From NCBI GenBank assembly GCA_040285825.1, contig JAUPSS010000007.1, positions 396,501 to 460,500 on the forward strand: a stretch of 64,000 nt of DNA, given 5' to 3'. This stretch comes from Eukaryota sp. TZLM1-RC. Taxonomy: Eukaryota; Protista; Metamonada: BaSk clade. Position numbers and translations under genes: made by a program. The notes below the pieces were generated by a model. It did not search any database. It was not told the DNA's origin and was given only the letters and a program-made list of their open reading frames with translations. Position 1 is the first letter of the stretch. Each line of letters starts with the position of its first letter. Positions 8,656 through 47,983 of this stretch are shown here, in pieces.

Positions 8656-10604
8656 TTTGTCTACCATTCAGAACTTTAAGAATTTCAAGGTTATGAGGCA
8701 TCTAATTACCAGTAATAGTCTTTATTTGTGAACAGTTTTAATACAATTTTTGTGTGTGTTTTTATGTTGAATTTATTCATTTTCTATAATGACATCATTT
8801 GTTTGACTCTAGAAATTAACTACATGTAATGAATATGAGATACGGTCGCACCGTTTAACACCTTCGAACCCCTTACAACACCAAAACAGATTTTCAGCTT
8901 CTATTTACAGGCGGTGATGTGAAAACGCTCTGATAATGTGGTTTTTTATTGTGCTGAAATTTATAAAAAAAGATTAAATAACAATAATTCACAAAAAACG
9001 ATTTATAAAACAATTCAACAACAATTACTCCACCATATACAAATAGTGTTTTAAACGCTACAATTGAAAAGCAGGATTATAAAAATATCCATCTAATTTG
9101 GGTAATTGACCATTTAAATCAACATAACCTGAACCAACCTCCTTCAGATTGATGGTGTAATTGATGAGATCAACAGTTATTTCCATTACATCACCTTTTA
9201 CCCATTTGGTTTAAGTTCCTGAAGTGTTGATGAAATTACCGTGATTATAGCAACCATAGACATCACAGGCTTTCAATCCAGAAGATTTAAAATTGTTACC
9301 ATCAATAACAAAAATAAGATGTTTTCAAAGGGGACGTGTGGTCTATGATTGTATTTGTCAATGTTATTAAAATTCCACCTACCCTTTTAAATGGTTCGAA
9401 AATGATTGCCAAACAGGTAATAACACTTACATTGGATCTTTGTAAACAAATATTGCTTCTGCTGATGACATCAATCTATTCGGTAGATCAGAATCATCTC
9501 TCCTCTTGCTCTCCCAAATATTGTTGTCTGGTCTCGAATGGACTAATTGTGTAATTGTAGGTGTACGAAGATTTGGTGCTCTTTGTTATTCATTATTATA
9601 TTAATATTATATTCTCTTGATTGAGAAAGAAATCGATTGACAAATACCCGAATTCGTTAGAAAATTATTTCCAAATTAAATAAAGATGAAATTCAAAGAA
9701 TGGACACATTTATGCAGCGTAAGGTACAATTTTTAATGACCTATATCATATTAAACTCAGAAAATATGAACGCTGATCAACTATGTCTGTCCATCTTAAT
9801 CGAAGAAACATTAAGTTTGCAATCAGTTTCTGCTTGACTGTACTATTGATGAACTAGGATGAGGATTCATACCACGGTAGATGTAATGAGATTTATTACA
9901 TAGGCAAAAAGGTTTTTTGTGAAAAAATTAAGAGCGCAGTTATATAAGAAACTAATATAGACTATTGACTAACGAATTATAAATTATAAACTATAATAAA
10001 CTATGATATGCAGCTCACCAAGGCTAACACTACCATTTCTCCTTTTCGAGCGTCCAGGCCTAGAAGAGACAACAGCAACTGTACTGTTGGAGTTACCATT
10101 AACGCGGCCACTGGCACACTTCCAAAAACTTAACCCTCTACTTTTCAAGGAGCAAAATAAGAAATCATCGGGCGCCTTTACTGTTGAGCTCAGAAGAAGA
10201 TGACGAGGAAGATATTATCTGTGATGAAAGTGTTATTGATTAGGTTTGAGTACAAACAAACAATAATTTAATAAATTTAGTTATATTATATTTCCCGAGA
10301 TTTGGAAACCAAAACTGATTTGAATTAATTGATTTTCGATTCCTAATTCTGATGTAAATCATCATTCATAAACTTTGATTGAAAGATGTAAGGCCACGTG
10401 ACAATGTATCCCAATATAATTTAATAATATTAAGGGTATTTTATTTTGTCTGTAAAGGTATTTTATTAATCTACAAACAGGTCTGTACAACTGCAAAGAG
10501 CAACGCAACAAAATCGACCTTTGATCACCCAATATAATATAAACTACGTGAGAGGCAGTAGGAAAAACCACAACAATAAAGGGAAAATTTCACTAAATCT
10601 AACA

Positions 10605-11057
10605 TTATAAAGGATTTCTAACAAAATGGATATGGACAAGATTCAAAACCAAAGACTTCAACTCTTGAACCAAGTCTACAAAACACCCCAGACCTTTTGG
10701 ATCTCTACTACCTTCAATTTCAGCCAAGCTAAATTGCTTAGCTGTTTCAAAACAAATATGGTAGTTCCCACTAACAATCTCCAGCTCTGTTTTACCGATC
10801 TTGTTTGCGAAAGGCCATAGCGAGTCATCTAGATCAACAATGCGTGAGTTGTCAACCATTTGACGTAAAAGGGATATCACAGCAGGAGAAGCCTGTAGCT
10901 CTCGCTTTATAAGGGCTTCATTCTTGTACTTAGAGTTGTTGCTGTATAGTATTGTTCCATTATCAAATATCTCAAACTCAAGAAACTCATGGCCTACAGC
11001 CCGTGCATAATGACCAAGATATACACGAGCATAGAAGGTATCATCTGTAGAACCCAT
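10605..11057 (-). CDS. MAGOH: Mago nashi (exon junction complex core protein)
   Basis: 150 aa with FYARVYLGH..GHEFLEFE, YSNNSKYKN, DDSLWP, ELEI..HICFETAK, SRDPKGL. Confidence 0.93.
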   Translation of the reverse strand: MGSTDDTFYARVYLGHYARAVGHEFLEFEIFDNGTILYSNNSKYKNEALIKRELQASPAVISLLRQMVDNSRIVDLDDSLWPFANKIGKTELEIVSGNYHICFETAKQFSLAEIEGSRDPKGLGCFVDLVQELKSLVLNLVHIHFVRNPL

Positions 11058-13337: not shown

Positions 13338-15059
13338 GTGCCTTGATGAAGGACTGCTTAAGGTTCTTGATAGTTAATTGTGTTCCATAGTTTTCTTGTC
13401 ATGTGAAATAATAAAGGAAATGTCTTGCTTCTATGTACAAAAAAGTATTGTGTTGGATATAGAACATGCAGCATATGTTTATCTCTTTGAAATAATTTAT
13501 TAATTAAATTCATCTCTGTCTCTTTTGAATCTCAACAATATACTATTCTTACGTGTGTTAGATATAACGTTTAGTTTACAAGATTCTGTTTTTTGTATCA
13601 TTAATTTTATTAGAAACCTATAAATCAGTGTAGGTAAAGCTTTCTAATGACATCAACGTTCCTGGACGGAGATGGTTGATCCATGTTGAGAACAAGGTAA
13701 ACGATGAAGAATAGAAATTGGTGGAATAATTTGTGTTTATTCCATGAAGTGCACAAATGATAAAAAAAGTTGTGAGTCGTTTATATCGCACCAGATCAAA
13801 TCGGGTGCGATGAGAAAAGGAGCTGCACAGTTGAATACTGAAGACAACTATTCTATAAAATAGCAAAAACTCGAGAAATAGCTGAAGAGGTGAACCTCAA
13901 ATCATATTTCTTTTCACCTTGATTTCCATCTATAAGATCGATTCAATCTTTCACCACATGCAACACATTCCTATCAATTTGACTTGTTTGTTTGTCCAAC
14001 AATTTTCTCTCACACTCAGAAGCGCTCTCTCTAGCACGCCGTGTGTTTCCCTAAAATCAGTTCAAGTTATTGAAACACACCATGATGTACCATAAGACAG
14101 TCAATCTCTGTATCAAAAATTGGATTTTTCGAAAAAAAAACAAATATCAATACAACTGAAATTTTCCAGGTCTGAATAATGCAGCATTAATTTGGTGAGT
14201 GTGAGTTAGTGAGCTTTTGTTAATTCAGATACACTCGATATCACTTTAGACTGTGAAGATCTGTTCAGTGGCAATTTGATATTTTGGCCAGTGAAACTTT
14301 TTTGTATTGATTAATGGTCACCTAGTGCGCAACGCGGGTTGAGCAAAAAACAAAAACAATTTGAACATACCACAAACGTTTCATCATGTTTGTTTTCTTA
14401 CATGCTACAATTTCTCATGTACCACAAATAGAGGTACAGAATATAAATTCATCCACCATATTTCAATAAATTTTAATTGGGCACGGTGACACCACAACGA
14501 AAGTCACGATGTTTTCCCTATTTTGCCGCAGATACGTTTATTATTGTTCGATCTCCCCTTGATTATTATTGAGGCGTCGCTTGTGATAACCAAAGACCTC
14601 GATGCACAAGCTATAGAGGCGGAAGAATGTGGAAAGTCAACATCGAAAGGACGTTTGACAGACGCTCTGTTAGACAAATGCCGTCTCCTGTTGATCACCA
14701 ATAACATAATGACGTAACCTCAAAATTTGTTTTAGGCTTTAAAGAAGTTGTAGAAAGTTTTAAGTCACTCAACGGAAATCCTTCTTTGATACAAATAAGT
14801 TTTTCAAAAATTGATAATTTGAAGAATTTTAAAGACTTGCTTCACACAGCCAAGATTCTCTTCCTGTTGAACAGTTTTCTAACATTCACCAATCTGAATA
14901 CTACAATGCAAAAAAAATATTTTACAGATATAGAAACAAATAATATAAAATATTATATTAATATTTGTTCATGAAACAAATATTGGATGTGGATTTGATG
15001 TTGGAATAATTTTCATAGATTCTATTGGTTTTAAATTTACACTAATTTTAATTACATCA

Positions 15060-15447
15060 ATATTAAATTCCGCTGATGTAATTGGAATACATTCTTCGAA
15101 ATCAATCATTTTAATATCCCATCGCTATTTTTGCGAAAATTCCGACTATGTGTATTATTATGTAATAACCCAGTGGACCAAAATTCTTTCAATACATTGC
15201 AACATTCAGCAAAATCCTTATCGTCAATATCAAATAATTTCTCAGTTCTTAATATTGGTCCATCCAAAACTTCAATCTTTGGAATGATCGATGGTTTAAT
15301 TGATTGAAGATATTCATAGATATAAATCTCTTTGAATAAAAATTTAATGTCTTGCTTGTTTGACATGTATGTTTCAACTTTATCTTTGTAAATTTCAACT
15401 ATCGCTTCATTTTTATTATGTACTTTCATTTGAAAAAACAAAATCAA
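15060..15447 (-). pseudogene. Decayed atypical kinase / phosphotransferase-like fragment
   Basis: KEIYIYEYL...IIPKI...LLHNNTHSRNF, followed after a frameshift by IDFEE, resembling the HxDxxxxN and DF motifs. Confidence 0.35.
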
Positions 15448-22800: not shown

Positions 22801-25023
22801 CTATATTTTATTTACATCTACATAGTCACCAAATACATCAATCAACCAGCCATTAGCTGAATACTGAATCCACCACGGAAAACAAGATAATTCAACTAAA
22901 AATTCATTCTTGATTAGTTTAACGGATTTAATTAAACCTTGAATCTTAAATTTCAGTGGAGATAGGGGAGAATTAGACAAACTGTCTTTATCAAATCCCC
23001 TCAGCTGAATGAATTGCAAAGAGGGAAAGTTTTGTCCAGTAATATTGGTAGGAACAAGGTCAATTACCAATTCCTTCACCCTTGTTAACTGCATTTGAAT
23101 ATTAACGTGTACATGAAAACAGACTTCCAAGGTAACAATGGAATTAGATAGTGCAACTTCTCCTTTTAATACATTTTTTGAAAGGCGGCGAGATAACACA
23201 AGCAATTCTTTCAATGAGGTGAGATAGCTCAAGTCAGTGACAACAATTCTTTGATGTTTAAGCACTAACTTCGCTAGTGAGGTGGGTAATTTCTGTATAG
23301 TCACAGTGCAATCAAGCTCTAGACATTGGAGCTTTGATAAATGTTCCAAATTTATTGAAGACTTTCTACCAAGAATCGACCTTCCACCAAACCTAACATT
23401 TTCAACATTGGGGAAAAACTGAAACAGCTCTGAATCACCGTTAAACCCATTATAGTAAACATCAAGTTTTTTGATTTTTCTGTTAATTACATTGGGACCA
23501 TTGTAAGTAATGGACAATCGCAACTGCAATTCACAAATATTTTCATCTAATTCTAAATTTTGGGGATCTTGCATACACATCTTGTTTTGAATTGAATGAA
23601 CATTAAACACTTCTTGAGCAAATTGAACTGCCCTTCTACTAATACCACATTTGGTGTGAAATCTTGCTTTAACATATGGATGATTACCAAAGAGCTCATC
23701 TAAAAAATTCAAATATTCCCAATAAACAAGCTTAATTAGACCACTAAACATTCTATCCAAAGGCTGTTTTGGATATCGGAACCTGCCAAGTATTTCTGAC
23801 AAAAATAATTGGACAGGTTGTGGTCGATCAAGCAAATCACCTGTACCTAATTGACCTACATTGTTCCTTCCCCAGGCCCAAACAGTGTTTTTGTTGTAGG
23901 CAAAAAGAAAGTTATAGCCTAAAGAAATACCTTCTATATTAGTGAAAGTTTTGATACACTGTGGTTCCTCAGAATCTTCATAAAAATCACTTAATCTACT
24001 CAACTTACCCCACACAAAACCTTTACCATTAATATCAACGGCAGAATAAATACCCTCACAACCGCTGATAGAAACAATATTTGTTAAACCACCAATTTGA
24101 GTAGGTTTTTCATTAAAACAGAAATTGTCCGAGTTTTTGATGAACTTCCAAACATTACCATCAAAATCAATAACGAATAGACAATTACTGTCAAATAAAA
24201 AGGAGCTTTGGAAAGGTCTTTTTAGAGATGAGTGGTTAGTAATTGGTATCTCAGTGATGGGAGCGATTTCTATACTATCATCAAAACTATAATAATCATC
24301 AGAACTGGAATCAGCATGATCAGAACTATCTTCTTCACGTTGTAAGTTAAAACAGAAGAAATCACCATTTCCATCAATTGCTACAAACGAATCACCGAAA
24401 ACAGAAATGGAAGCAATACCATTCAATTCTTCTATTAATTCAAATGGTTTACCATCTCCCCATTTGATCACCTGACCTTCCTTGGATACAGCAAATGAAC
24501 AACACCCACCTCCATAAACTTCCCTTGGATTGAAAGGAATTTCGATTTGGGTAATTGGTAGTGAACGACTATAAGAAAGGCAAATTTGACTGTCATAACA
24601 TTCACCCCAGCCATATAACTTACCTTCAGAAGAGAGCGCAAGGGAGTGAGTAATTCCAGCTGAAATGGAGATAATACCAGTAAGTGATAATTTGATTGGT
24701 GATTTGATTCTACAAGGTCCATTATGAAAAACTTGACCATAGAAATTACGCCCCCACCCGTAAACCTCACCAGAATATGTGAGAAGAAGGATGTGCTGAT
24801 GAGACACTGAAATGAACTTAACCCCTACCCCTGGTTCCCGGAGAGGAATGTGAGAAGCAGCGGCAAGGGTTTGTTCAGAACTAAGTGGGCTTGTGGCAGA
24901 GTGACGAGTAATTGGAGCATCGGGCAAGAGATCAAGAGAAGGGTTTGTGAAAACATGACCAATGTGTTGTGTTGGAGAGTAGGAAGGAAAAGAGGTATCA
25001 GGAGAGACCTTTTTTTGAGGCAT
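22801..25023 (-). CDS. RCC1-repeat + LRR-like family protein, copy 3
   Basis: Intact 740-aa ORF; mirror of 45755-47983. Confidence 0.87.
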   Translation of the reverse strand: MPQKKVSPDTSFPSYSPTQHIGHVFTNPSLDLLPDAPITRHSATSPLSSEQTLAAASHIPLREPGVGVKFISVSHQHILLLTYSGEVYGWGRNFYGQVFHNGPCRIKSPIKLSLTGIISISAGITHSLALSSEGKLYGWGECYDSQICLSYSRSLPITQIEIPFNPREVYGGGCCSFAVSKEGQVIKWGDGKPFELIEELNGIASISVFGDSFVAIDGNGDFFCFNLQREEDSSDHADSSSDDYYSFDDSIEIAPITEIPITNHSSLKRPFQSSFLFDSNCLFVIDFDGNVWKFIKNSDNFCFNEKPTQIGGLTNIVSISGCEGIYSAVDINGKGFVWGKLSRLSDFYEDSEEPQCIKTFTNIEGISLGYNFLFAYNKNTVWAWGRNNVGQLGTGDLLDRPQPVQLFLSEILGRFRYPKQPLDRMFSGLIKLVYWEYLNFLDELFGNHPYVKARFHTKCGISRRAVQFAQEVFNVHSIQNKMCMQDPQNLELDENICELQLRLSITYNGPNVINRKIKKLDVYYNGFNGDSELFQFFPNVENVRFGGRSILGRKSSINLEHLSKLQCLELDCTVTIQKLPTSLAKLVLKHQRIVVTDLSYLTSLKELLVLSRRLSKNVLKGEVALSNSIVTLEVCFHVHVNIQMQLTRVKELVIDLVPTNITGQNFPSLQFIQLRGFDKDSLSNSPLSPLKFKIQGLIKSVKLIKNEFLVELSCFPWWIQYSANGWLIDVFGDYVDVNKI

Positions 25024-25045
25024 TGAAACAGATGATATCCATAAC

Positions 25046-26785
25046 CCAATTCTGTTTCTTCAAAGTTTCTACCGAAATATCTCCTACGTGTTGTAAATGT
25101 TAACATCTTAACATAAACTTCTTCAATAACTGCTCAAATATGGCTGTAAAATCATTAAAATTTAAAATTAAATAAAATTAAATGTAAAAATTATGTTAAA
25201 TTGATATTGAGTTGGTGTACCTCTGCACTGACATAGAATGTCGATACTTATGTGCCAAATTGAGGTAAATCTAAGAAAAACGGCTGCCACACAGTTAGGA
25301 GATCCATTGCACATTACTATGATCTAATCATGTAAAGCTTTTGGCTAATGTAATCAAGTGTCTTTTTTAGGGGTGTAAATTGAAACTAAACCAAAATCAA
25401 ACCAATAACGAAAAACCCACAAGAGAACAAGAGGTAAATGAAGGAGAAGGAAACTGGAAAAAAACATAGAGTTTAGACGGAGTAACAACAATTAGAACAG
25501 CTAGAGGATAAATCAAGCTGATGTTGATGACCACTAATAGAGATACAGTGGATAGGCATTTGATACAATTGTGGAAATTAGCAATCAATTTGAAATTGCA
25601 ATAAGCATGTCAGACATCGTGTCAGACAGCGAGATTATCATGACTCTTCCCATTCTTCTAACATCATGCAGCAGAAGGAGAACAAGGATTACGAGGTTAC
25701 GAACTCAGTTCCCTCCTCCTCTAACCTGTTCTTCAAAGAACAGCCGAGTACTTCTTCCCAAACTTCTCAGTCGGGAACAGTCATCCTGTTATACAGGAAT
25801 AAACGGAAAGTCAGAGCCTCGATTACTTATCGAAATCGTCGTTCTGATCCTTCCGTGGGGGTAGAGTACTGCACTTTTCTGAGTCATCATGTGAGTCATG
25901 ATAAGGGTGCTGTTGAATCAGCCATGGTGCTAATCACCTTAGATATGGGATGTTCTTCTTTGTGTTTTGTTTTGAATTGTTATTTTGATGTTATTGAGTT
26001 TGTTGTTTTTTGTTGCTCAGCTATTTGTACTGATGTTGCGAAATCGATGGGCGATAAAATATACTGAGGTAGATTACGACAGGAACCAAATGATAGCGTC
26101 TAACGAAATGACAATCGAAGATGCAAATACCGAAATGTGTGCGTTTGCTGTCAATTCAGCAACTTTTATAGATTTTTCCAACTTTGTGGTTGCCAAACTT
26201 CGGCAAGTTTGTTTGACAATTGACTTTTATAATCTTAACTTGTGGAGCATTCATAAAATGCAAGCTTTTATTCACAAACAAAAGACTGAAAGTTGGTTGT
26301 TAAAAAACCTTGTTCAGCAATTTGGCAATCCAAAAGACATTTAAATACTAATGGGTAATTATGGTAAAAAAGGTTCCAAGAATTTGAAACATGAGAGACC
26401 TACTAGAGGCATTGGATGGATTCAATTTCTGAAAGGAAATTGATTTGAAGTATTTATGATTAATGAAACTTTCACTTCAGCGAAATGTCCTGTTTGTTTT
26501 GAAAAGGTTGCTATGTTTTTGAGAGTAACAAGCCCCAGAATTTATAGAAGGAAAAAGACTCCTGTTACCACATGTCATGGTTTATTAGCTTGTAATAGTG
26601 AGAGTTGCAAACTCAGTAACAAAGGCTTAACAAAGCTTTTCAATAGAAATAAGCTGGCTTGTCTGAATATGTTTACAATTGCTGAAGCCAGAATGAGTGG
26701 TAATGAAAGGCCTCAGTATCTGTGTAGTAGATAGTTTTTGTAATTATTCCACACGAAAAAAAGATCGTGTATTTATGGGAATTTC
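25046..26785 (+). mobile_element. 1740-bp Fanzor-carrying insertion with 7-bp TSD CCATAAC
   Basis: Absent from the right arm. CCATAAC at 25039-25045 and 26786-26792. Removing it restores colinearity with the reverse complement of 45715-45757. Confidence 0.72.
26060..26734 (+). pseudogene. Fanzor1-type C-terminal remnant (family 2)
   Basis: KQKTESWLLKNLVQQFG..ILMGNY..PTRGIGW..INETFTSAKCPVC...CHGLLAC...C..LFNRNKLACLNM...RPQYL. In-frame stops; RuvC-III Asp replaced by Asn. Confidence 0.85.
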
Positions 26786-27178
26786 CCATAACAAATAAAT
26801 AAGTGTCCTTCTTAGACTAATTTGCAGGGATTGAACTTTTGAGAAGTGGAAGATTTGATTCTTATTAACCTTCACTCTCTGTAGGTATTTCGGTCAATCT
26901 CCACCATTTATATAAGCTTCCAGCACTGCCAACATGTTCAGTAAACTATTTCAATCTCTACTCCACAATCTTTCGTATGATTTACACATGGTAAGCCCCT
27001 GACGAATAGACATGTCATGTCTCTCTTGGCCTAGAATTTTTGCACCATCGGAATTATTCCACTGTTTTCTCCGTTTTCTTACAGTTGAAATGACCACAAC
27101 TGGTTCGAAACTCATCAATCAGGAAGACCCTATAACCAGCTTTTTTAAATAGGATGCTCTACCCTTGTTCTTTGGTAA
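26786..27178 (-). pseudogene. Fanzor1-type 3' remnant (family 3), inverted copy of 45320-45739; not in the ORF track
   Basis: Reverse complement aligns to LFKKAGY.VFLIDEF.TS...IR.GLT.CKS.ERLW.RD...LNMLAV and to the noncoding tail (23/25 match AAGGACACTTATTT..TTGTTATGG). Confidence 0.88.
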
Positions 27179-27499
27179 CTTTTTTAGTTTTCAAGGAAGT
27201 AATAGAGGGATCCGGTCATTAATGAAAAGCGAAGTAATTCGTGCAACTTTGTTTCTCATTGCAGAAATTTCGTCTTCAATATCAAATATTAATATAAAAT
27301 ATAATCATAAAAATATGAGTTTATTTTGTAAAGTGGTGCAAGATCAATAAAAATTTTCCCAATATTAATGAGCAAATGTTTCCTTCTTTGGAGTTGATTC
27401 AAATGGTAATAACTCATAATGATTGTTTATCAAGTTATCTTCTATCACCAGTGAAATTAAATAGTCAAGGTTTAACAAGTATAACAACCAAATATTCAT

Positions 27500-27660
27500 T
27501 TTTGATTAGTTGAACAGATTTAATTTAACGTTCAACTAATCATGAATGGTTATTTAGTTGATTTATCTTGTTTTCCATGTTGTATTCAATATCCAGCTGA
27601 TGGCTGGTTGAAGGATGTATTCAGTAATTTTTCAGATGGAGATAAACATCTTTTGTAGTA
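27500..27660 (+). pseudogene. 3' fragment of an RCC1-LRR family gene
   Basis: YLVDLSCFPCCIQYPADGWLKDVF matches the family C-terminus LVELSCFPWWIQYP. Sits at the mirror position of copy 4. Confidence 0.7.
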
Positions 27661-44214: not shown

Positions 44215-45739
44215 TTGTAAATTTGTATTTGAGGGCAATGTTTTATATTAATAATTATTGAGAAGATGAGGAGAGCAAACTCCTCAATACTCTTCCTTTG
44301 AAGAATTCTTGTATTTCCTCATATATCAAAATTGACAAGACAAGTTTTTGGACTTGTTCTTTGTCCAATTAAAGGACTTTCATGGTCAAAGGTCGTTGAT
44401 TTGTTTTTATGGAATATCTTTTTGAAAATGGATAAAAACACTAAACACAGATTAAAAACACTAAACTTTATTCAGAAAATTCCAAGTTCATCATGTGCAG
44501 TATCGAGACTAATGGAATAGCAGTAAGTTTCATTCAATCTAGAATGGACTTGAAAAAGTACAAAGAAACTCCAGAAGAATTGAAAGATAAAGAAAAATAT
44601 ATTGATGACCCCAGTGTCAATCCTTCTGAATTCCAAGATATGACCCTTGCTGCTACTGATCCAGCTAACCCTGATCTACTTTATTTTTCTACCAATTTAG
44701 CTACTAGAATGACTCATTCAAAAAACCTGAAAGAGATAAATATGTTCATTCCAGGTACACTCAAAATCAACGAAGATTTGAGTCGAAAAGTTCCAAATTC
44801 CAAAGAATAAGAGACATCATACGGAATGACACTCTTATCTACTGGTAAAGTGATTGACCTATCCAATTATGAACCATCTGAAGAGCAGCAAAAAAGGATG
44901 GATTTAAACAGCAGTATAATTAATCAAATGACTGAAAGAACAATTAGTTTATTAACAGGAAAAGTACCTCAAGAAATCAATATTCCCCACGAAATTGATT
45001 AATCATTCAATTTGAGAAAAAATGATCAAAAAACTAAATCTGTAGCAGAATGGGAAGCAACATTATCCCAATTCAATTCCAAAAGCTGCAGGTTTGATAG
45101 AATTATGGAGTATATTAAACAAAAGAATTATGTGAATAGTATTGTTGGTGAAGTCTATCATCAAAAAACATCGAGGAAACTAAGATGGTGGGCTGAGATT
45201 AATCGCACAAGATCTGAGGCGAAGATGATTCAGAGATTCAAATCAGTAATTGGTGATCCCAGCCAAGTAGTTATTGGAATCGGAGACTGAGAACAACGAA
45301 AACACATGAAATTCAAAGAACCTACCAAAGGAAAAAAATTGAGAATTCTATTTAAAAAGGCTGGTTATAAGGTCTTCTTGATTGATGAGTTTCAAACCAG
45401 TTGCTGTTATTTCAACTGTAAGAAAGCGGAGAAAACAGTGGAAAAATTCCGATGGTGCACAAATTCCAGGCCATGGAAGAGGCATGAGATGTCTATTCGT
45501 CACGGGCTTACTACGTGCAAATCATGCGAAAGATTGTGGAATAGAGATCGAAATGCTTCGCTGAACATGTTGGCAGTGATGGAAGTTCATATAAATGGTG
45601 GAGATAGACCGGAATACCTGCAGAGAGCCAAGGTTGTCTATGGTTCAAAGAAAATGGAATCAATGAGAAAATCTCCCACTTCTCAAAAACTCAGTCCCTC
45701 TACATCGGTGTAAAAAGGACACTTATTTCATTGTTATGG
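44190..45739 (+). pseudogene. Fanzor1-type nuclease remnant (family 3), 5'-truncated, with 3' tail
   Basis: YLRAMFYIN..LPLKNSCISSYIKID, SIETNGIAVSF, RuvC-I AATDPAN, RKLRW..INRTRSEAKMI..VVIGIGD, EPTKGK, RuvC-II IDEFQTS, RHGLTTCKSC, RuvC-III WNRDRNASLN, RPEYL. Several stops and frameshifts. Confidence 0.9.
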
Positions 45740-45754
45740 ACATCATCTGTTTCA

Positions 45755-47983
45755 ATGACTCAAAAAAATGTCTCTCCTGATACCTCTATTCCTTCCTACT
45801 CCCCAACACAACACATTGGTCATGTTTTCACAAACCCTTCTCTTGATCTCTTGCCCGATGCTCCAATTACTCGTCAATCAGCTACAAGCCGACTTAGTTC
45901 TGAACAAACCCTTGCCGCTGCTTCTCACATTCCTCTCCGAGAACCAGGGGTAGGGGTTAAGTTCATTTCAGTGTCTCATCAGCACATCCTTCTTCTCACA
46001 TATTCTGGTGAGGTTTACGGGTGGGGGCGTAATTTCTATGGTCAAGTTTTTCATAATGGACCTTGTAGAATCAAATCGCCAATCAAATTACCACTTACTG
46101 GTATTATCTTCATTTCAGCTGGAATTACTCACTCCCTTGCGCTCTCTTCTGAAGGTAAGTTATATGGGTGGGGTAACAGTTATGAAAATCAAATTTGCAT
46201 GTCTTATAGTCGTTCACTACCAATTACCCAAATCGAAATTCCTTTCAATCCAAGGGAAGTTTATGGAGGTGGGTGTTGTTCATTTGCTGTATCCAAGGAA
46301 GGTCAGGTGATCAAATGGGGAGATGATAAACCATTTGAATTAATAGAAGAATTGAATGGTATTGTTTCCCTTTCTGTTTTCGGTGATTCTTTTGTAGCAA
46401 TTGATGAAAATGGTGATTTCTTCTATTTCAACTTCAACTTACAACGTGAAGAAAATAGTTCTGATCATGGTGATTCCAGTTCTGATGATTATTATAGTTT
46501 TGATGATAGTATAGAAATTGCTCCCATCACTGAGATACCAATTACTCACCACTCATCTCTAAAAAGACCTTTCCAAAGCTCCTTTCTATTTGACAGTAAT
46601 TGTCTATTCGTTATTGATTTTGATGGTTTTGTTTGGAAGTTCATCAAAAACTCGGACAATTTCTGTTTTAATGAAAAACCTACTCAAATTGTTGGTTTAA
46701 CAAATATTGTTTCTATCAGTGGTTGTGAGGGTATTTATTCTGCCGTTGATATTAATGGTGAAGTTTTTGTGTGGGGTAAGTTGAGTAGATTAAGTGATGT
46801 TTATGAAGATTCTGAGGATCCTCAGTCTATCAAAACTTTCACTAATATAGAAGGTATTGCTGTTGGTGAAGACTTTCTTTTTGCCTACAACAAAAACACT
46901 GTTTGGGCCTGGGGAAGGAACAATGTAGGTCAATTAGGTACAGGTGATTTGATTGATCGACCACAACCTGTCGAGCTATTTTTGTCGGAAATACTTGGCA
47001 GGTTCCGATATCCAAAGCAGCTTTTGGATAGAATGTTTAGTGGTCTAATTAAGCGTGTTTATTGGGAATATTTGAATTATTTAGATGAGCTCTTTGGTAA
47101 TCATCCATATGTTAAAGCAAGATTTTACACCAAATGTGGTATTAGTAAAAGAGTAGTTCAATTTGCTCAAGAAGTGTTTAATGATCATCCAATTCAAAAT
47201 AAGATGTGTATACAAGATCCTGAAAATTTAGAATTAGATGAAAATATTTGTGAATTGCAATTACGATTTTCTACTAAATATAATGGTCCTAATGTAATTA
47301 ACAAAAAAATCAGAAAACTTGATGTTTACTATAATGCGTTTAACGGTGACCCAGAGCTGTTGGCATTTTTCCCCAATGTTGAAAATGTTAGGTTTGGTGG
47401 AAGGTCGATTCTTGGTAGAAGGTCTTCAGTAAATTTGGAACATTTATCAAAGTTCCAATGTCTAGAGCTTGATTGCACTGTGACTATACAGAAATTACCC
47501 ACCTCACTAGTGAAGTTAGTGCTTAAACATCAAAGAATTGTTGTCACGGACTTGAGCTATCTCACCTTATTGAAAGAATTGCTTGTGTTATCTCACCGCC
47601 TTTCAAAAAGTGTATTAAAAGGAGAAGTTGCACTATCTAATTCCATTGTTACCTTGGAAGTCTGTTTTCATGTACACGTTAATATTCAAATGCAGTTAAC
47701 AAGGGTGAAGGAATTGGTAATTGACCTTGTCCCTACCAATATTACTGGACAAAACTTTCCCTCTTTGCAATTTCTTCAGTTGAGGGGACCTGATAAACAC
47801 AATCTGTCTAATTCTCCCCTATCACCAGTGAAATTTAAGAATCAAGGTTTAATTAAATCCGTTAAACTAATCAAGAATGAATTTTTAGTTGAATTATCTT
47901 GTTTTCCGTGGTGGATTCAGTATTCAGCTAATGGCTGGTTGATTGATGTATTTGGTGACTATGTAGATGTAAATAAAATATAG
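45755..47983 (+). CDS. RCC1-repeat + LRR-like family protein, copy 5 (ATG 45755)
   Basis: Intact ORF; mirror of copy 3. Confidence 0.87.
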   Translation: MTQKNVSPDTSIPSYSPTQHIGHVFTNPSLDLLPDAPITRQSATSRLSSEQTLAAASHIPLREPGVGVKFISVSHQHILLLTYSGEVYGWGRNFYGQVFHNGPCRIKSPIKLPLTGIIFISAGITHSLALSSEGKLYGWGNSYENQICMSYSRSLPITQIEIPFNPREVYGGGCCSFAVSKEGQVIKWGDDKPFELIEELNGIVSLSVFGDSFVAIDENGDFFYFNFNLQREENSSDHGDSSSDDYYSFDDSIEIAPITEIPITHHSSLKRPFQSSFLFDSNCLFVIDFDGFVWKFIKNSDNFCFNEKPTQIVGLTNIVSISGCEGIYSAVDINGEVFVWGKLSRLSDVYEDSEDPQSIKTFTNIEGIAVGEDFLFAYNKNTVWAWGRNNVGQLGTGDLIDRPQPVELFLSEILGRFRYPKQLLDRMFSGLIKRVYWEYLNYLDELFGNHPYVKARFYTKCGISKRVVQFAQEVFNDHPIQNKMCIQDPENLELDENICELQLRFSTKYNGPNVINKKIRKLDVYYNAFNGDPELLAFFPNVENVRFGGRSILGRRSSVNLEHLSKFQCLELDCTVTIQKLPTSLVKLVLKHQRIVVTDLSYLTLLKELLVLSHRLSKSVLKGEVALSNSIVTLEVCFHVHVNIQMQLTRVKELVIDLVPTNITGQNFPSLQFLQLRGPDKHNLSNSPLSPVKFKNQGLIKSVKLIKNEFLVELSCFPWWIQYSANGWLIDVFGDYVDVNKI

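Follow-up and report, generated by a model that had tools for sequence, protein, structure and literature searches.

A 1740-bp block of DNA that ends in the remnant of a family-2 Fanzor lies tail-to-tail in the 3' end of a family-3 Fanzor of Eukaryota sp. TZLM1-RC, enclosed by two perfect copies of the heptamer CCATAAC. The nesting was found within a stretch of 64 kb, referred to here as the window. We consider it to be an ordinary insertion of one transposon into another that has since decayed, and give this reading a probability of about 0.7. Neither of the two Fanzor copies at the nested site is able to make a nuclease, the family-2 copy being deleted and broken by stop codons and the family-3 copy being reduced to a stump. 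The features on which the following description is based are listed in Table 1.

Table 1. Features of the nested site and of the family-3 right ends compared with it (window positions unless a locus is given)
Feature	Position	Strand	Basis or remark
RCC1-repeat gene, intact, 740 aa	22801-25023	-	ORF list; Pfam RCC1, RCC1_2, WD40_RLD
Severed last 22 nt of family-3 right end, GTTATGG ATATCATCTGTTTCA	25024-25045	-	Includes left CCATAAC; 7-copy alignment
Non-family DNA, ~374 bp, no ORF of note	25046-25419		BLAST; Logan depth
Family-2 5' region: leader and N-terminal ORF (25666-26067)	25420-26032	+	Related proteins; DNA homology to L009-L012
Internal deletion junction, ~3 kb missing	26033-26040	+	Comparison with L009, L011, L012
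Family-2 3' region: Fanzor C-terminal half and right end in GGGAATTTCCCA	26041-26788	+	Alignment, ORFs
Subterminal hairpin ACACGA-N8-TCGTGT	26751-26770	+	Sequence
Terminal hairpin TGGGAA-T-TTCCCA	26776-26788	+	Right-end alignment; consensus fold; internal to element
Right CCATAAC	26786-26792	+	CCA = family-2 terminus, TAAC = family-3 tail DNA
Truncated family-3 tail, 405-bp stump: C-terminal coding remnant and right end to insertion point	26789-27193	-	BLASTN, tblastn
Right-arm family-3 Fanzor	44493-45754 (coding remnant to 45713)	+	ORFs, Pfam, sequence
Family-3 right-end stretches	L001:10600-10730, L002:10480-10620, L003:10330-10450, L004:10330-10460, L005:10400-10540, window 45650-45757		Conserved to base before ATG

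Results

The direct repeat and the uninterrupted sites

Read directly from the sequence, CCATAAC stands at 25039-25045 and at 26786-26792 and brackets positions 25046-26785. Counting both strands, the heptamer occurs three times in the 64-kb window, and the third occurrence, on the minus strand at 45733-45739, is the uninterrupted site in the opposite arm of a large palindrome. The same uninterrupted stretch was also found in five further family-3 copies (loci L001-L005). With the junctions fixed by the alignment to the empty site, the chance of a 7/7 repeat at them is ~6e-5, although CCATAAC is not in itself over-represented. The block between perfect repeats, its tail-to-tail position against a minus-strand family-3 3' end and the empty target in the mirror arm had all been noted in the original prediction, and the coordinates are borne out by the sequence.

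The two arms of the inverted repeat are 91-97% alike, and the region is rich in repeats. According to tblastn, Fanzor-like coding remnants are present at three places only in the window, namely in the 3' half of the family-2 block (about 25666-26734, plus strand), in the family-3 stump and in the family-3 copy of the right arm. The large ORFs beside the site were also considered as Fanzors and were ruled out, as Pfam shows them to be RCC1-repeat genes of 740-790 aa. The RCC1 gene to the left of the block has its ATG at 25021-25023, and its leader consists of the family-3 Fanzor end. None of the pieces listed among the short Logan contigs spans either junction.

The insertion site marks the exact point at which arm-to-arm identity falls from 96% to 80% (24344-25045 compared with 45733-46434, and 26786-27193 compared with 45307-45739), the family-3 stump being ~80% identical to the right-arm copy by BLASTN (26786-27193 vs 45739-45307). 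The left arm is also devoid of the family-3 5' part and of most of an RCC1 copy, of which a C-terminal fragment is left at 27516-27650. Homogenisation between the arms that was halted beside the heterology is one possibility for the drop in identity.

Family-3 right ends reach the start codons of host genes

Right ends of seven family-3 copies were aligned, five from other loci of the same genome (L001-L005) and both copies of the window. The conserved sequence runs past GTTATGG as ACATCATCTGTTTCA and continues up to the ATG of a host gene in 6/6 uninterrupted copies; the right ends read ...GTTATAGACATCATCTGTTTCA, directly followed by ATG, in front of six unrelated host genes. Since family-3 conservation extends 15 nt past the heptamer to the ATG, the insertion sits inside the family-3 tail, with an entry point 15 nt from the last base of the family-3 end and 22 nt upstream of the RCC1 ATG (25023). 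CCATAAC was also tried as the terminus of family 3 and was ruled out, given these 15 nt of continued conservation. At the insertion position most family-3 copies have GTTATAG, and GTTATGG is found only in the two window copies.

The family-3 copy of the right arm has an ORF broken into four pieces and an uninterrupted right end, which abuts the ATG (45755) of the RCC1 gene at 45755-47983. The family-3 C-terminus matches Pfam PF07282 (Cas12f1-like TNB) with 27.6 bits vs a cut-off of 26.3, and the protein P0001 scores 28.3 bits for the same profile.

The right terminus of family 2 and its flanks

Further family-2 right ends were collected by a HMMER search with the family-2 C-terminus and by locus look-ups (L002, L005, L006, L007, L008, L009, L011 and L012). 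The sample comprises nine right ends, including that of the window, and five left regions, and was ascertained via annotated protein fragments. The right terminus of the family, ...GGGAATTTCCCA, is constant in 7/9 copies: TTTCCCA ends the copies at L002, L005, L006, L007, L009 and L012, and the sequences differ thereafter. Intact right ends finish at ...TTATGGGAATTTCCCA, which corresponds to window position 26788, and a Logan contig likewise breaks at 26788. The original prediction is upheld as to a block flanked by a repeat, and its element boundary moves from 26785 to 26788, 3 nt further. Because this end is shared by the family, the right CCATAAC begins with three bases, CCA, that belong to the element, and the duplication therefore measures between 4 bp (TAAC) and 7 bp. 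A 3-nt match of the element terminus (CCA) with the target has a chance of ~1/64.

Beyond the terminus, the window copy is followed by TAAC and other copies by CAGA, TTTA, CATT, TACA, TGAA and TCGT. Neither CCATAA nor any other fixed motif was found at the right flanks among the other loci aligned, and the first flanking base is T or C in 8/8 copies. A preference for CCATAA had been predicted, together with the remark that flanks free of it would speak against the idea; the flanks of the other right ends are unrelated, and 0 have CCATAA. The suggestion that both families simply end in TTATGG(G) does not hold either, as family 2 has the terminus given above and family 3 has GTTAT(A/G)G 15 nt before its end.

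Three of the nine family-2 right ends (window, L002 and L006) adjoin family-3-type tail sequence. The contacts differ: the window copy stands at -15 and is inverted, the L002 copy stands at ~-68 in direct orientation, and the L006 copy lies ~26 nt before a ACAATATCTGT..ATG terminus. Five of the nine (L002, L006, L007, L009 and L011) are followed after 16-70 nt by the ATG of a host gene on the same strand.

Two of these loci show further rearrangements. In L002 (1849-1933) the family-2 right end is followed by CAG and then by approximately the last 65 nt of a family-3 tail that runs the same way; this tail piece is bracketed by CACAG and CTGTG and runs into the host ATG at 1931. A Logan contig has the same join as L002 (26788 to 26834, opposite strands). 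In L011 a ~900-bp element (MITE) with 36-bp inverted ends interrupts the family-2 right end at 14353-15264, and the family-2 terminus (GGGAATTTCCCG) resumes after it, ~33 nt before the host ATG at 15319.

The inserted block is a composite and internally deleted copy

BLAST searches of the window and of 12 loci (310 kb in all) brought up no relative of the first ~374 bp of the block (25046-25419), and the Logan depth of this part is like that of unique flank, apart from a low-complexity stretch near 25149-25255. AACCCA is present at 25043-25048 and again at 25414-25419, on both sides of a single-copy segment of 370 bp, and immediately ahead of the left limit of family 2 stands GAAAAACCCACAAG, which is similar to the right terminus that the Fanzors share (AATTTCCCACAG). 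The AACCCA-flanked segment may have arrived as a secondary insertion or be what is left of another element end.

The N-terminal ORF that follows has at least 14 related proteins in TZLM1-RC. The left limits of family-2 homology are ragged and vary by locus, falling at 25421, 25459, 25536, 25607 and 25828 in comparisons with L009-L012. In L009 the stretch 6950-7157 matches window 25828-26032, and the 3' part of the element is found ~3 kb downstream at 10126-10873; in L011 and L012, DNA_pol_B_exo1 and DUF8286 genes lie between the two parts. Segments that are ~3 kb apart in L009 are joined in the window, which marks its copy as a derivative, by internal deletion, of an exonuclease-Fanzor element of 4-4.5 kb. 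The missing ~3 kb holds the PolB-type exonuclease and the N-terminal half of the Fanzor. The remaining 3' region is 87-91% identical to L002, L006, L009, L011 and L012, and stops at 26342-26344 and 26441-26443 interrupt its reading frame.

Family-2 5' regions at two other loci contain tandem units of ~97 bp (L010:10273-10720 and L011:10261-10900). The window copy retains one such unit (25940-26032), and the 3-kb deletion begins immediately after it. On its left side, the family-2 copy at L010:7818-10648 is head-to-head with an RCC1 gene ~55 bp away, and at L011:9652-9871 the left side of family 2 is joined to an RCC1 fragment.

No terminal inverted repeats were found in the block, the best inverted match (11/13) being internal and not terminal. 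Two candidates for a second target site duplication (TSD) were rejected: an 8-mer match at L006 proved to be internal to the element, and at L011 the RCC1 fragment of the left flank does not resume on the right. At the other family-2 copies, where the left ends are ragged, no further TSD was readable.

Hairpins at the right end

Both hairpins that had been described at the right end exist, the subterminal ACACGA/TCGTGT at 26751-26770 and the terminal TTATGGGAA-T-TTCCCATAA, a stem of 9 bp in the window copy, at 26773-26791. The terminal hairpin reaches 9 bp in the window copy only, through the flanking TAA (26789-26791); the element itself supplies six of the nine bases on the 3' side of the stem, which recur in other copies, and 3/9 pairs come from the target. 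The GGGAA/TTCCC core is internal to the element and the extension is confined to this one copy, which argues against an RNA stem completed by the target site.

The subterminal hairpin is kept in 6/8 aligned right ends and appears in the single-sequence fold, not in the consensus fold, with no compensatory changes. Across eight copies RNAalifold gave 0 compensatory pairs for the right-end stems, which are predicted structures, and the single-sequence fold has a z of -1.7. An Rfam search of the right end gave no relevant match, and none of the RNA runs contains the stretch. The 23/25 match that had been read as a guide pointing at the other Fanzor family reflects no more than the paralogy between the flank and the family-3 tail.

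The family-2 nuclease

Family 2 has no Pfam match. Its identity as a Fanzor, and with it the claim that the block terminates in a family-2 Fanzor, is confirmed by the C-terminal remnant at 26351-26734, which aligns to the family-3 C-terminus (30% identity, E 3e-11), and by a TS-x-x-C...C...C motif. A PDB sequence search with the Fanzor body of L011 gave no match. In an alignment of C-termini (window 26456-26734 with P0014, P0015, P0016, P0018, P0019 and P0025), NRN is found in 7/7 family-2-type sequences where family 3 has NRD. The NRN set includes proteins of 507-1281 aa from the sister strain TZLM3-RCL, and the long ones among them may be intact. The RuvC-III 'RD' motif (...C4 zinc finger-X(5,50)-RD) defines Fanzor/TnpB (Bao and Jurka, 2013; PMC3627910); this catalytic motif is present in family 3 and absent in family 2, where the exonuclease-Fanzor fusion may have an inactive or rearranged RuvC site.

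Discussion

The insertion, the empty sites, the true right terminus of family 2, the absence of a common flank motif and the composite, deleted make-up of the block can all be read from the sequences; in what order things happened, and by what chemistry, is our inference. A family-2 exonuclease-Fanzor copy would have entered the 3'-terminal leader of an older family-3 remnant in inverted orientation, 15 nt before the end of that leader and 22 nt before the RCC1 ATG, and ~374 bp of unrelated DNA would have arrived on its 5' side. The entry left a short direct repeat of 4-7 bp. TAAC in it is certainly target DNA; CCA, which coincides with the conserved element terminus ...TTTCCCA, may be the first three bases of a 7-bp duplication or else a microhomology of 3 bp. 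The uninterrupted state is ancestral, and decay would have followed the insertion. The intact neighbouring RCC1 ORF counts for a nested insertion. Two observations sit less easily with it: the CCA coincidence hints at microhomology or end-directed joining and against random integration, and 3/9 right ends beside family-3-type tails are more than expected for genome-random sites, which counts against an ordinary insertion. Nor did the copies compared yield a consistent left end, a terminal inverted repeat or a usual duplication length for family 2. A strict one-ended model with 5' truncation was not adopted as the main reading, as most other copies are ~4 kb long.

Family 2 might prefer a niche, namely short leaders upstream of host ATGs; many of these would be built from family-3 right ends, so that nesting of one Fanzor in another would recur without a fixed target word. 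Such a preference could stem from open chromatin, from a motif in the leader or from guidance by RNA. The proximity of five of nine right ends to a same-strand host ATG, the contact of three with family-3-type tails at differing positions and orientations, and the fact that every family-3 right end seen stops at a host ATG all point in this direction. However, the sample is small and biased by its ascertainment through annotated fragments, in the window the family-2 right end faces away from the host ATG, gene-proximal copies could have been retained through selection or deletion bias, and compact intergenic space alone makes proximity to an ATG likely, so that we regard such a preference as unlikely. 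A more specific form of the idea, in which family-2 elements home to ATG-proximal leaders made of the right ends of other families, Fanzor tails serve as landing pads and the joining is directed by the terminal CCCA and a following pyrimidine, seems to us improbable. We would give no more credit to an event that was not transposition proper, in which the family-3 tail suffered a double-strand break and a family-2 copy together with its upstream flank was copied or ligated into the gap, one side being joined via CCA microhomology and a short stagger being filled in. The composite nature of the block with its single-copy left 374 bp, the varying left limits and missing inverted repeats of family 2, and the 3-nt overlap of element terminus and target are consistent with such a capture, but the right junction coincides with the true terminus of the family, which is rarely expected of random capture, and no donor with 25046-25419 beside a family-2 copy was found in the window and the 12 loci.

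A target-specific and possibly anti-Fanzor element, with a terminal RNA stem completed by CCATAA and a TAM in or beside CCATAAC, is very improbable. The 9-bp stem and the 7-bp repeat are present in the window copy, CATA lies within the site, and Fanzor1 reRNA scaffolds have been reported to include the TSD (PMC10711439). Against this, other family-2 flanks have neither CCATAA nor the stem extension, most family-3 copies have GTTATAG and not GTTATGG, the catalytic NRD is replaced by NRN in family 2, the window copy is dead, and the RNA runs do not contain the stretch. CCATAAC targeting, a TAM at that place and Fanzor-versus-Fanzor guidance are accordingly unsupported, other copies ending 3 nt further with unrelated flanks. 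An assembly artefact would also have to be considered in a repeat-filled palindrome of 95-97% identity in which no listed Logan contig bridges either junction; chimeric joins are scarcely credible, since the junctions are base-clean, the direct repeat is identical to the empty site, and wherever the block is unique, its Logan depth resembles the flank's. An ordinary nested insertion that later decayed is what we retain.

The nearest published pattern is that of CRe-1/2/3, the Fanzor1-bearing Helitron2 families of Chlamydomonas (PMC3627910), which have intact 3' ends with hairpins, internal deletions, extra non-Fanzor 5' DNA at some loci and duplications of ~7-19 bp (PMC3627910). Similarly, family 2 of TZLM1-RC has a constant right end with hairpins (7/9 copies), and its window copy is internally deleted, carries 374 bp of foreign 5' DNA and has a repeat of up to 7 bp. 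In contrast to CRe-1/2/3, which insert after TTTT or a T-rich tetranucleotide, the left repeat is preceded by GATAT, or by TCCA if the repeat is TAAC; no RepHel, ATIR or 5' hairpin is shown for family 2, and its protein is an exonuclease-Fanzor fusion. Most of its copies are long (~4-4.5 kb) despite their varying 5' limits, unlike the 5'-truncated CRe pattern. Membership of family 2 in the CRe-type Helitron2 group is not established.

With the TnpB elements of IS200/IS605 and IS607, family 2 shares the 3' position of the nuclease gene, a right end with structure next to the flank from which the guide would come, and the lack of terminal inverted repeats. It differs from them in that no TnpA was seen, no fixed motif in the left flank (TAM) is shown and a short repeat is present, as well as in being eukaryotic and fused to a PolB-type exonuclease. 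For Fanzor1, the reRNA scaffold includes the TSD and the reRNA runs ~15 nt beyond it (Yoon et al., 2023; PMC10711439). There a known transposase makes the TSD, which is fixed and found in all copies, whereas family-2 flanks all differ. Generic nested transposon insertions have the same short direct repeat and a paralogous empty site, and no essential difference from them is apparent; the sole oddity is that the target is the ATG-proximal leader of Fanzor DNA.

If the original prediction were true, it would describe the first natural RNA-guided transposon nuclease that is aimed at another one, with a readable TAM. Target-derived bases in a guide-RNA scaffold have already been published for Fanzor1 (PMC10711439) and would not be new in kind. 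What the evidence presented here reveals is one dead copy, of composite make-up, inside another that is dead as well. The locus nevertheless provides a base-exact pair of filled and empty sites for an exonuclease-Fanzor family; it fixes the right terminus of family 2 and shows the family-3 terminus reaching a host ATG. Such a filled and empty pair, together with both termini, is what a genome-wide study of site choice beside start codons needs.
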